64,000 nt of DNA, from the sequence record NC_019526.1; one strand, written 5' to 3'. A model generated the notes under the pieces. It saw only the letters and a program-made list of their open reading frames with translations. It did no database searches and was not told the DNA's origin. The position numbers and the translations under genes are program-made. Shown piece after piece: positions 50,581 to 56,851 of this stretch; positions within the stretch are counted from its first letter, which is position 1; each line of letters starts with the position of its first letter.

Positions 50581-51479
<899 letters not shown>

Positions 51480-51481
51480 AT

Positions 51482-51688
51482 ATGCATGTAAAAATTAACC
51501 CAGAAAAGAACTTTTATAATGAAGTATTCGGTTCTGAAGATTTAGTACGTCATTTTCCTGAATTAGAAACAACTGGCGTCGAAGTTTATTATGATGGTGA
51601 CTTGTATCATATCATTAAAGATGGTAAACTAGCTGGAGATTGCTGTTTCTTTGATGAAGAAGAAATGGAACATCTTACCATTCTATAA
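51482..51688 (+). CDS. Hypothetical protein
   Basis: 68 aa ORF, AGGA RBS. Confidence 0.7.
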   Translation: MHVKINPEKNFYNEVFGSEDLVRHFPELETTGVEVYYDGDLYHIIKDGKLAGDCCFFDEEEMEHLTIL

Positions 51689-51700
51689 ATAAAAAAAAAT

Positions 51701-52192
51701 GGAGGCGACTGTATTCAGTACTGAATCAATTGATCGTTGCGTAATCAGATTCAGTTAGCGTAGTATTAGCTGGGACGCGTACTTGTGAGCCGCAACCACA
51801 ACGTACTTAAAATCCAACGCGTGGAGGGTAAGCATTCTGTACTGAATAGCAGAAGGGCTACAAAAACTTATACTTCAAAAAGGTTCGGGAAGTATTCGTA
51901 ATAAACCGTTTAATCGTCTTATCAGTGCTATGAACAACCAATATATTTGTGGTGGATATTATTGGACTCAAGTAGATGATGTTATCTTTGTACGCTTTCT
52001 AACCAAAAGGTCAGATAATAAAAATGTAAGAAAATTTCAGTACTGATAGCTGGAACCTTACTATAGTAAAAAGACCTGATATGACTCGCTTAGGTCTTTA
52101 AATTATATAATGCGAGGGACGCTACGCCTTAGTTTAGGGCTAAATCGTAAGGATTGCGTACTAAACCGCCTTGAGAGTCCCAAGGCAACTTT
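51701..52192 (+). ncRNA. Candidate large multi-pseudoknot ncRNA (~490 nt)
   Basis: GC-enriched, no long ORF; many hairpins; H-type pseudoknot 52070-52116; terminal hairpin followed by a U run. Confidence 0.6.
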
Positions 52193-52302
52193 TAATTTAA
52201 ATGAATTTGTACAAAACACAAAAAGGTGATATAATGATTCTATCTGAAGAAGATTGGGGTGTTTATCCTAAAGACGAATTTGATGGATTTTAATAAAAAA
52301 TC

Positions 52303-52332
52303 TTGAACAAAAACAAAATAATGTGATATAAT
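52303..52332 (+). promoter_or_regulatory. Sigma70-like promoter TTGAAC-18-TATAAT
   Basis: Directly precedes the ncRNA at 52343. Confidence 0.6.
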
Positions 52333-52342
52333 ATTAGCACTT

Positions 52343-52460
52343 AATGAGGATAGGTGCAGTTGGTGAGATACCGCATGAGAAATCATAGACACCGTAGAAA
52401 GCTAAGGGCTTGGTGAGCGACGGCAAAACCCAACCGTAGTAGAAGCTCTAGGAACTCATT
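52343..52460 (+). ncRNA. Candidate structured ncRNA (~118 nt)
   Basis: Closing stem AATGAG/CTCATT; internal GGTG/CACC, ATGA-GAAA-TCAT, ACGG/CCGT. Confidence 0.55.
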
Positions 52461-52486
52461 CAGTACATTTTAATTTAAAGAATTAA

Positions 52487-52574
52487 GGCCGTATGTCCAA
52501 ATTGGTAAAGGAGACAGACTTAAAATCTGTTGGTGATATTCACCTTCTCGATTCGAGTTCGAGTGCGGCTACCA
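52487..52574 (+). tRNA. trnL: tRNA-Leu(TAA)
   Basis: Cloverleaf GGCCGTA/TGCGGCT, anticodon loop CTTAAAA, long variable arm, encoded CCA. Confidence 0.92.
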
Positions 52575-52603
52575 AATCTATAGTACTTCATTAGGTAAAC
52601 AAT

Positions 52604-52927
52604 ATGTGTACTGAAGCAAGAAGATATGTTTATATTTTGGTTCGCAAAGATTTAGAACTAAAGGATATTATTGTTCAAACTGCTCATGCTTCATATGAAA
52701 GTGCAAAAGAATTCAAAAATAATGCTGATAGAACATCTATTATAGTTTTAGAAGTCAAAGACTTATACAAACTAAATGATGCTAAAAGTTATTTAAATTC
52801 TAATGGTATTAATTGGACTGTGTATACTGAAAAATCTTTAGGATTTGGAGAAACTGCTATCAGTACTGAAGCACTCAATAACGAACAACGAAAAATTATG
52901 CGTAAGTTCCAATTATTGAAAGTATAA
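52604..52927 (+). CDS. PTH2-like peptidyl-tRNA hydrolase (second copy)
   Basis: YVYILVRKDL...VQTAHAS...IIVLEV...ETAIST. Confidence 0.7.
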   Translation: MCTEARRYVYILVRKDLELKDIIVQTAHASYESAKEFKNNADRTSIIVLEVKDLYKLNDAKSYLNSNGINWTVYTEKSLGFGETAISTEALNNEQRKIMRKFQLLKV

Positions 52928-52940
52928 ATATAATAACAAA

Positions 52941-53016
<76 letters not shown>

Positions 53017-53021
53017 AATTC

Positions 53022-53117
53022 AACAGGTAGTAACGCTCTTAGGTGTACATTAATATAGGAATAAGGGTTAACAGTACTGTACACAAACGAGTAACCCCGA
53101 AAGACCCGAAACCTGTT
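53022..53117 (+). ncRNA. Candidate pseudoknotted ncRNA (~96 nt)
   Basis: AACAGGT/ACCTGTT closing stem; crossing helices GTGTAC/GTACAC and GGGTTA/TAACCC. Confidence 0.55.
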
Positions 53118-53127
53118 AAAGTTTTAC

Positions 53128-53177
53128 GGATGATTATAAATCTGAATTGACAGAAACAGCTAAAACTGTTATTATCC
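53128..53177 (+). ncRNA. 50-nt three-way-junction RNA, copy 1
   Basis: GGATGAT-TATAAA-TCTG AATTGA CAGA-AACA GCTAAAAC TGTT-ATTATCC. Confidence 0.75.
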
Positions 53178-53185
53178 TATTTTAT

Positions 53186-53370
53186 TCCACAATCAGACGT
53201 ATATGGTGTAAGTTACGTCGATGAAATCCAGAACAAGATCTCTGGTACTCTAGGAAGTGGTGAATGTTAACCTAGACGGGCTTGTTAATTGGACGATAAG
53301 CAATTAATACTTGACTAGCAGGTTTAAATTAGAGGTGACTGTCCTTCACTATACTGGAAAACCGGATGGA
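53186..53370 (+). ncRNA. Candidate structured ncRNA (~185 nt) with pseudoknot
   Basis: Four hairpins; loop TGGTGAA can pair with TTCACTA at 53345. Confidence 0.5.
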
Positions 53371-53388
53371 TTTTTAATTAAAAAAGTG

Positions 53389-53417
53389 TTGAACAAAATG
53401 TTCAATAATGATATAAT
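53389..53417 (+). promoter_or_regulatory. Promoter TTGAAC-17-TATAAT containing the inverted repeat TTGAAC-N5-GTTCAA
   Basis: Repeated at 54264, 54432 and 54639. Confidence 0.7.
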
Positions 53418-53423
53418 AATTAT

Positions 53424-53505
53424 CAATGTAAGGCGTGGAACAATGTTTACAGAAGTTACTTAGTAGCCTGTACGCCCCACGTCAAGGTAGCCGAAAGGCA
53501 AGTTT
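53424..53505 (+). ncRNA. Candidate structured ncRNA (~80 nt)
   Basis: GGCGTGG/CCACGTC, TACAG/CTGTA, GCC-GAAA-GGC; starts right after a promoter. Confidence 0.45.
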
Positions 53506-54633: not shown

Positions 54634-54767
<134 letters not shown>

Positions 54768-54846: not shown

Positions 54847-54875
54847 TTGACAAAAATGTTCAGTACTGATACATA
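54847..54875 (+). promoter_or_regulatory. Promoter TTGACA-17-TACATA
   Basis: Variant of the tRNA-cluster promoter repeat, upstream of tRNA(CAT). Confidence 0.5.
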
Positions 54876-56160: not shown

Positions 56161-56353
<193 letters not shown>

Positions 56354-56377
56354 TTAATTTAAATGGAGTACTGAATA

Positions 56378-56578
56378 ATGTCCAAATATGTTAATCGTCA
56401 AAAACGAAAAGCACGTACTAAGGACGAAATTCTACAGTTGATTCAAAAAAATCAAAAAGATGTAGTTATTGAAGAATATATTTTTCAGTACGGTAATCAA
56501 CAATCAATGGTACAAGAAAGTAATGGTAAGTATCATTCTGAACATTACGACCTTATTAAAAGAATTCTTTTGAAATAA
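56378..56578 (+). CDS. Hypothetical protein
   Basis: 66 aa ORF, GGAG RBS. Confidence 0.65.
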   Translation: MSKYVNRQKRKARTKDEILQLIQKNQKDVVIEEYIFQYGNQQSMVQESNGKYHSEHYDLIKRILLK

Positions 56579-56733
56579 ACAATAATACTCATCATCTAAT
56601 ATCAGTACTGATGCGTATCAGCAGGTGGCTTGATGGGCAGTACTGACAGGATACATCGTTCTCCGGTGGCGGGTTCGGTGGATATACGTAAAGTCGTATT
56701 GGGTATACCAAATATAATAATAAAAATATGTAA

Positions 56734-56809
56734 TAATGTGATAGCTCAAATAGGTAGAGCGGGAGGCCAAAGTGCTGACTGGTTTGTGAGTTCGATTCTC
56801 ACCCATTAT
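56734..56809 (+). pseudogene. Degenerate tRNA (anticodon arm not canonical)
   Basis: TAGCTCAAATAGGTAGAGC D arm and GTGAG-TTCGATT-CTCAC T arm intact; acceptor imperfect. Confidence 0.6.
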
Positions 56810-56820
56810 TAATAAAATTG

Positions 56821-56851
56821 TAAGCTACCCTGTTATTTGGGTAGCTTTTTC
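56821..56851 (+). terminator. Rho-independent terminator
   Basis: AAGCTACCC-TGTTATTT-GGGTAGCTT-TTT. Confidence 0.75.

Follow-up and report, generated by a model that had tools for sequence, protein, structure and literature searches.

The tRNA islands of phages repeatedly carry elaborate RNAs, as exemplified by T4 rnaC and rnaD, ROOL and GOLLD. In T4, the small non-coding RNAs of the tRNA cluster are the species 1 and 2 RNAs, rnaC (139 nt) and rnaD (119 nt), which, according to annotation, are encoded adjacent to a tRNA gene and on the tRNA strand. The pRNA of phi29-like podoviruses, which serves the packaging motor, measures about 170 nt and features a covarying intermolecular loop-loop pairing that is central to its function. 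ROOL and GOLLD are RNAs of phages and prophages often located beside tRNA islands, with pseudoknots and kissing loops that were found by covariation (bioRxiv 10.1101/2024.12.08.627333). Moreover, abundant non-coding RNAs of 236-451 nt were confirmed by RNA-seq for the related jumbo phage PA5oct (PMC7318152).

The window analyzed here comprises 64,000 nucleotides of the Klebsiella jumbo phage vB_KleM_RaK2 (NC_019526 positions 124001-188000), and all coordinates refer to it. Within this window, positions 51698-51866 of the + strand, hereafter termed domain I, are considered to represent the conserved core of a new non-coding RNA family of phages, i.e., a compactly folded and stable RNA acting in trans (probability about 0.6). 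The family belongs to a known kind, the structured phage RNAs of tRNA islands, and is neither a tmRNA nor ROOL or GOLLD. It adds a compact RNA of about 170 nt with two covarying tertiary contacts to this kind. Like T4 rnaC and rnaD, domain I lies in a tRNA cluster, beside a tRNA and on the same strand; unlike these, for which no pseudoknot architecture is annotated, it is pseudoknotted. ROOL and GOLLD range from about 580 to over 800 nt and form 8- and 14-mer cages, whereas domain I has only ~170 nt. The PA5oct RNAs ncRNA001 and ncRNA002 (236 and 451 nt) are encoded in the terminal repeat and not adjacent to tRNAs, in contrast to the tRNA cluster position of domain I. The phi29 pRNA is similar in size, but RaK2 is a T4-like myovirus and no Rfam match to pRNA was obtained here.

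The region flagged by the initial annotation (51701-52192) is a non-coding gap, unannotated in RaK2 and in most of its relatives. On the 5' side, ORF215 ends at 51688, while a sigma-70-like promoter sets the 3' limit (Table 1). The tRNA genes begin at 52487 with tRNA-Leu, after which come seven others on the same strand (ARAGORN: 8 tRNAs). The gap had been described as a GC-enriched RNA of ~490 nt with multiple pseudoknots and no long open reading frame. A conserved + strand non-coding RNA linked to the tRNA cluster was borne out by comparison, and the longest open reading frame on either strand indeed does not exceed 39 aa. The comparative support, however, covers only ~170 nt (51698-51866) instead of the complete unit. 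Likewise, the GC enrichment holds for the 5' part (0.435 at 51700-51899 versus about 0.27-0.33 in the flanks), but not for the rest of the gap. The RNA is pseudoknotted as proposed, but its covarying contacts are 51736-41/51791-96 and 51712-18/51842-48, not the H-type knot at 52070-52116. The suggested stems ACTGAATC/GATTCAGT (51720/51748), TTGTG/CACAA and ATACTTC/GAAGTAT are all present, as are the GTTTAG/CTAAAC sequences. Of the stems, the first two were confirmed by comparative data and correspond to P2 and P4, respectively.

Table 1. Features in and around the non-coding gap of RaK2 (coordinates of the 64,000-nt window).
Feature	Position	Strand	Evidence
TATAAATA, T4-type late-promoter box, candidate promoter	51684..51691	+	T4 late-promoter consensus
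Domain I, conserved structured RNA, core of the finding	51698..51866	+	R1 match, A5 covariation
P1, closes three-way junction holding h1, P2/P2a and P3	51705-10 with 51772-78	+	3/6 pairs compensatory
h1, junction strand GUAUUCAGU, pseudoknot 5' half	51711..51719	+	pairs with h5
Pseudoknot h1:h5	51712-18 with 51842-48	+	15/15 sequences pair
P2 (ACTGAATC/GATTCAGT)	51719-27 with 51748-57	+	compensatory, Munch versus CBB
P2a	51731-34 with 51744-47, loop L2a 51735-43	+	3 compensatory pairs
Kissing loop, L2a side GUUGCG with L4 side CGCAAC	51736-41 with 51791-96	+	covariation
P3, small variable hairpin	51758-70	+	100% of cells pair
P4 (includes TTGTG/CACAA)	51779-87 with 51797-806	+	7/9 pairs compensatory between genera
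L4, P4 loop with conserved CAAC	51788-96	+	
Conserved UUAAAA junction and P5 hairpin	51807..51825; P5 51813-16 with 51822-25	+	2 compensatory pairs
P6	51828-33 with 51857-61	+	first pair G-C to A-U in CBB
P6a, loop h5 ACUGAAUA at 51841-48	51835-40 with 51849-54	+	compensatory
AT-rich stretch, Alcyoneusvirus only; holds start of 38-codon ORF and h1' (51920-29)	51867..52025	+	fold z -0.22
Putative second P6/P6a-like module: GUAAG/CUUAC around UUUCAGU/GCUGGAA, loop ACUGAUA	52026..52061	+	weak model matches
10-bp hairpin AAAGACCTGA/TTAGGTCTTT (RNA AAAGACCUGA/UUAGGUCUUU)	52070..52099	+	sequence, minimum-energy fold; invariant in all copies
Terminator-like hairpin GCCUUG/CAAGGC and U run	52168..52195 (hairpin 52168-86)	+	terminator scan
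Sigma-70-like promoter, extended -10 box; downstream boundary of element	52208..52235	+	promoter scan 10/12 matches, TG motif

Folding energies did not distinguish the gap from chance. Compared to shuffled sequences, the whole 492 nt were not more stable than expected (fold z -1.66 for the + strand and -2.67 for the - strand), and the three pieces of the gap, the first of which is domain I, gave fold z values of -1.06, -0.22 and -1.72. In addition, the minimum-energy fold of domain I differs from the fold supported by covariation. The comparison to Rfam, which the initial annotation had named as a check, covered the window and the relatives with 4227 models, using both the gathering score and E<=10 as thresholds; it revealed only tRNAs and chance-level matches, so the gap matches no known family. 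This includes RNase P RNA, group I and II introns, known self-cleaving ribozymes and riboswitches, for which no Rfam match was obtained. The proposed likeness to ROOL and GOLLD thus stands for the genomic context, but not for the models, since neither ROOL (RF03087) nor GOLLD (RF01998) matched RaK2 or its relatives at the gathering score or at E<=10. As thermodynamics and known families were uninformative, the case rests on the comparison with other phages. A description of the domain I RNA, or of the palindrome treated below, was not found in the literature searched, nor was the RNA in Rfam 15.

The whole region occurs in nine Alcyoneusvirus records with 94-100% identity. At relaxed thresholds, its first ~165 nt also match a non-coding stretch within the tRNA cluster of Asteriusvirus phages of E. 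coli and Salmonella, e.g., 121Q and PBECO4. With the 121Q element as query, 37 Asteriusvirus records were found, sharing 92-100% identity among themselves. A covariance model termed R1 was built from seven Asteriusvirus sequences alone, i.e., without any sequence from Klebsiella phages. Applied to the window, R1 matched 51698-51866 over the full model length and on the + strand only (77.1 bits, E 1e-16), with no other match. The element is always situated within the tRNA cluster and on the tRNA strand. In Asteriusvirus, it is preceded by an unrelated small ORF and followed by tRNA-Thr, and the ORFs next to the element are not homologous between the genera. A conserved neighboring protein as partner was accordingly rejected, as ORF215 and gp138 of 121Q are unrelated. 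Within the closer relatives of RaK2, OU509535 and phiKp_21 feature 25+12 differences per 200 nt in the domain and 0-5 per 100 nt in the flanking genes. Despite this divergence, both keep the pairing of the domain, a pattern which selection on structure predicts. Two pattern scans of IMG/VR returned RaK2 and 121Q only, and a single scan of metagenomes added one contig resembling Asteriusvirus, besides 8 matches at chance level. The tRNA regions of 16 IMG/VR relatives with a PTH2-like neighbor held no further copies with default filters, which would miss weak copies like that of CBB. As homologs, T4 rnaC and rnaD were rejected, with R1 (filters off) reaching at best 5.7 bits (E 0.31) in T4 70200-73200. 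The same applies to the PA5oct non-coding RNAs, where R1 scored at most 13 bits and the best match lay outside the annotated RNAs.

A third group of copies was reached by a model of both genera, Alcyoneusvirus and Asteriusvirus (R2), which gave a weak full-length match in the Erwinia phage Hallingskeid (L018:37124-37306, 20 bits), 59 nt before tRNA-Gly. Searches by blastn with the Hallingskeid and CBB sequences link this copy to Pectobacterium phage CBB, the Salmonella phages Munch, 7t3, SE_PL and PHA46, and Klebsiella phage fENko-Kae01. The copy of CBB is located between tRNA-Ile and gp524, while the domain ends 12 nt before tRNA-Gly in Munch and fENko-Kae01. When the architecture was transferred to a plain MAFFT alignment of four of these phages, 93% of the cells were paired and 12/43 pairs were compensatory, as opposed to 0-2 compensatory pairs in the slid controls. 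P1 was not recovered in the CBB/Munch group, and P5 is absent there, with AAAACGG leading straight into P6. The flanks of the CBB site also exist in phage GAP32, where they enclose no element, and a search of 40 kb of its tRNA region detected no copy. The element is thus dispensable in some relatives. Moreover, the CBB copy is flanked by short direct repeats TATTAATT (L048:490-700 versus GAP32 L019:38930-38965), which, together with the clean absence in GAP32, suggests that the element was gained or lost as a discrete cassette. With CBB and GAP32 as a natural presence/absence pair and with clear base pairs to target by compensatory mutagenesis, the role of a tRNA-island RNA becomes testable in laboratory hosts. 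As a separate observation, permuted tRNA-like pieces (T-arm then D-arm) occur in CBB at L048:375-465, between tRNA-Ile and the RNA copy, and in GAP32 at L019:38565-38900. Their match to YrlA (Y RNA-like) is weak (31.4 bits, E 7e-4, gathering score 69).

The secondary structure of domain I was evaluated on a 14-sequence alignment fitted to the model (A5); a further alignment, A7, was likewise model-fitted. In A5, 98.1% of the cells form standard pairs and 18/49 pairs are compensatory, part of these events being common by descent with about 4-5 independent lineages. Sliding the 3' partners by 1-3 columns reduced the pairing to 32-40% and the compensatory pairs to 1-4. About 44 cells of A5 hold G-U pairs; read from the opposite strand, these would be mismatched as A-C, which identifies the + strand as the one that folds. 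Compensatory changes support P2/P2a, P4 and P6/P6a. In P1, they are found within Alcyoneusvirus as well as between the genera. P2 reads UACUGG/CCAGUA in Munch and UACUAG/CUAGUA in CBB, P2a alternates between UGAU/AUCA and GGGA/UCCC, and P5 occurs as UCCA/UGGA, CCCA/UGGG and CCUA/UAGG. P6a is formed by UUCUGU/GCAGAA in RaK2 versus UUCAGU/GCUGAA in Asteriusvirus, and its closing pair changes between C-G and U-A in the CBB/Munch group. The loop of P3 varies in sequence and length. This compensatory pattern disfavors two readings which do not involve an RNA structure. One of them takes the 38-codon ORFs 51785-51901 or 51930-52046 as small proteins. These ORFs do exist and are annotated in two records, Muenster and K64-1, but their homologs are restricted to near-identical phages, a Pfam match is missing and the ORF at 51930 is not preceded by a Shine-Dalgarno sequence. 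Furthermore, the genera differ by indels of 1-2 nt along the domain and the annotations of the records conflict, some being placed on the opposite strand, so that a coding function is highly doubtful. The other reading concerns binding sites on the DNA and is taken up with the palindrome below.

Two tertiary contacts were recognized in addition to the helices. The kissing loop between L2a and L4 pairs in 100% of the cells, with 2/7 pairs being compensatory and a G-U intermediate. In Asteriusvirus, it is formed by GUUGUAAU/AUUACAAC or GUUGUGAU/AUUACAAC, while the kissing loop of Hallingskeid is weak and comprises 4 bp. The h1:h5 pseudoknot is invariant in Alcyoneusvirus and Asteriusvirus (UAUUCAGU/ACUGAAUA) and thus uninformative within those genera. 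In CBB, Munch and fENko-Kae01, both sides change from UAUUCAGU/ACUGAAUA to UAACCAGU/ACUGGUUA, and two adjacent pairs are compensatory. As h1 and the 5' strand of P2 adjoin directly, the h1:h5 helix should stack on P2. Covariation does not separate intramolecular from intermolecular contacts, neither for L2a-L4 nor for h1-h5, and this leaves room for a self-assembling RNA. In such an RNA, separate molecules would be joined into a homo-oligomer by the pairing of the loops and by the CAGUACUG core, which is self-complementary, as in ROOL, GOLLD or phi29 pRNA. The kissing loops of ROOL and GOLLD, first read as tertiary, proved to be intermolecular (bioRxiv 10.1101/2024.12.08.627333), and domain I shares with them the tRNA-island setting, in addition to having a palindromic core. 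On the other hand, the domain is with ~170 nt far below the size of ROOL and GOLLD, a single molecule could plausibly accommodate both contacts sterically, and ROOL, GOLLD and pRNA gave no Rfam match at E<=10. Self-assembly is compatible with the compensatory pattern, but is regarded as decidedly unlikely.

The core of domain I is further linked to a palindrome which is widespread in this genome. CAGTACTG is found 35 times in the window versus 0.44 expected (~80-fold enrichment), e.g., at 51716, 52038, 54653, 54861, 56603 and 56638. Its core AGTACT has 151 copies in the 64-kb window and 19 versus 2.1 expected in 8.6 kb, and the motif AGTACT/CAGTACTG recurs roughly every 0.4-2 kb along the genome. 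Inside + strand ORFs, 28 of the 35 CAGTACTG copies are located, almost only in the frames xxC-AGT-ACT-Gxx and xCA-GTA-CTG. An enrichment was also observed for 121Q, Hallingskeid (53 in 40 kb) and GAP32 (14 in 40 kb). As GAP32 has no RNA at the CBB site, the palindrome is a clade-level signature independent of the RNA. It could act as a signal for DNA binding, modification or nicking, or at the RNA level, and it is not mentioned in the genome papers of RaK2 or CBB. Apart from domain I, CAGTACTG fills the spacer of two sigma-70-like promoters (54639-54667 and about 54847-54875) just upstream of tRNA-Ser(UGA) and tRNA-Met; the TG of the extended -10 box belongs to the palindrome, whose position is operator-like.

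Within domain I, UUCAGUACUGAA is present twice, at the h1/P2 junction and in the P6a/h5 region. A cluster of the signature palindrome might accordingly represent protein-binding sites on the DNA, e.g., an operator-like region. The ~80-fold enrichment of CAGTACTG across the window, mostly within genes, its presence in the two promoter spacers and its abundance in GAP32, which lacks the RNA element, would fit such a function. Still, compensatory changes affect helices unrelated to the palindrome (P2a, P4, P5 and the kissing loop), the G-U pairs fit the + strand only, and in the CBB group the stem of P6a changes while the h5 loop is kept. A DNA-level element is hence very improbable. A cis-acting switch, in turn, is compatible with the compensatory pattern and would make use of the repeated UUCAGU/ACUGAA, of which five copies or half-copies exist (h1, the two P2 strands, the P6a 5' strand and h5). 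These could allow mutually exclusive folds that gate a terminator or the processing of the adjacent tRNA. The minimum-energy fold indeed pairs the full palindromes 51712-26 with 51834-48 (93% complementary), which excludes P2 and P6a. Downstream of the element, RaK2 and Asteriusvirus have a terminator, and in Munch, fENko-Kae01 and Hallingskeid tRNA-Gly lies only 12-59 nt away. Nevertheless, covariation favors P6a, as the A-to-U change of RaK2 is compensated in P6a, but results in a mismatch in the palindrome-palindrome stem. Moreover, 115-325 nt of unrelated sequence separate the domain from the terminator, and strong promoters right after the terminator make the downstream genes independent of read-through. 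Altogether, a switch appears unlikely. Similarly speculative is a direct tie of the RNA to AGTACT/CAGTACTG, in which the stack of h1:h5 and P2 would show UAUUCAGUACUGAAUC as a continuous helix plus exposed half-sites. The RNA might thereby titrate, guide or assemble with a factor reading the motif, or oligomerize via the motif into a ROOL/GOLLD-like particle; such a tie is improbable.

In the preferred reading, a trans-acting RNA, the seven helices (P1-P6a) are compacted by the L2a-L4 kissing and by the pairing of h1 with the P6a loop, and the h1:h5 helix would be stacked directly on P2. While the comparison demonstrates homology, strand, fold, both tertiary contacts and the genomic setting, the transcription, the processing and the role of the RNA described in the following are inferred. 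Transcription would run in the direction of the tRNA genes and yield a stable RNA. For RaK2, the 5' end may be due to initiation at the late-type TATAAATA box or to transcription continuing from the operon upstream. This box, which shares bases with the ORF215 stop codon, lies 7 nt ahead of the conserved start of the RNA, and the 64-kb window has just 2 such boxes on its + strand. Late genes of CBB and GAP32 are known to feature ATAAATA upstream (PMC5259590). Upstream of the element, ATAAAT(A) is found with varying spacing in phiKp_21, most Asteriusvirus and Hallingskeid, and is absent in 121Q, A4 and CBB. From sequence, a dedicated late-type promoter for domain I is thus possible. The GCCTTG/CAAGGC hairpin with its U run, already pointed out in the initial annotation, was also found by the terminator scan (52168-52186). 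It probably marks the 3' end of the RaK2 transcript (52168-95), which would then lie behind a genus-specific extension. The elements of Asteriusvirus end in a hairpin and U run as well, and a TTGACA promoter comes next. As tRNA-Gly begins 12-59 nt after the domain in Munch, fENko-Kae01 and Hallingskeid, the 3' end would there be generated by RNase P. As for the function, the RNA would most likely work in trans, offering a rigid scaffold or a decoy to some factor in the metabolism of tRNA or in translation, by analogy to what is suspected for T4 rnaC/rnaD and ROOL/GOLLD.

The remaining 3' tail (51867-52192, ~325 nt) is restricted to Alcyoneusvirus. Its copies are nearly identical, which renders the pairing and the comparison of conservation with the flanks uninformative. 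Asteriusvirus phages possess an unrelated, structured 3' tail of ~115 nt ending in the hairpin and U run, and nhmmer with an HMM of this Asteriusvirus part revealed no homology to the RaK2 3' part. On 51969-52066, R1 and R2 gave weak matches of 10.5 and 10.7 bits, respectively. Additionally, 52039-48 is complementary to 51920-29, and the sole variable base (G or A) keeps a G-U or A-U pair. This weak evidence suggests that the tail might hold a degenerate tandem copy of the domain. The hairpin at 52070-52099 proposed in the initial annotation is present and its loop CTCGC faces GCGAG at 52112. Its H-type pseudoknot pairing is invariant in every copy, and the complement of a 5-nt loop is found within 40 nt in 15% of shuffles. 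With 10-bp hairpins appearing about once per 1.9 kb in the window, the hairpin alone is unexceptional. The further ACGC/GCGT pairing does not persist, being broken by a C-to-A change in K64-1, KP13-7 and Muenster.

The 38-codon ORF is present at 51930-52046 as described and falls within what may be a second domain copy. The tmRNA layout it seemed to echo did not hold. No tmRNA was identified by ARAGORN, nor by Rfam in 51300-53500 at E<=10, and apart from the internal short ORF noticed before, the gap does not resemble tmRNA, lacking a tRNA-like domain and a tag. Upstream of the ORF, no Shine-Dalgarno sequence was found, and its 38-aa product gave tblastn matches only in 9 near-identical phages and no match in Pfam. 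In GenBank, the records of K64-1, Muenster, SHEFM2K, SD-6_S16, Turkey5 and others contain small hypothetical proteins annotated over the element on either strand. Such small ORFs (51785-51901, 51930-52046 and equivalents) are probably spurious, and the present analysis thereby corrects several genome records. The hosts of the element are culturable jumbo phages of E. coli, Klebsiella and Salmonella, some of which are candidates for therapy.

Further observations concern the surroundings of the element. Immediately after the downstream promoter, 52234-52293 represents a short ORF-like stretch (MILSEEDWGV...) with nucleotide-level conservation to 121Q (MFQEENWGF), whose ATG overlaps the predicted -10 box. 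The unannotated gap 52338-52486 upstream of tRNA-Leu is confined to Alcyoneusvirus (fold z 0.08, without Rfam match). In the other members, it is duplicated around an extra gene of 474 nt, which RaK2 does not possess. The gaps 53017-53390 and 56270-56830 within the tRNA cluster are likewise unannotated. Lastly, ORF216 (52604-52927), annotated as hypothetical, belongs to the PTH2 family (peptidyl-tRNA hydrolase 2), with 27.2 bits versus a cut-off of 23. The Pth2 reported in the RaK2 paper is a different protein (ORF188), and relatives of ORF216 are found across RaK2-like jumbo phages.
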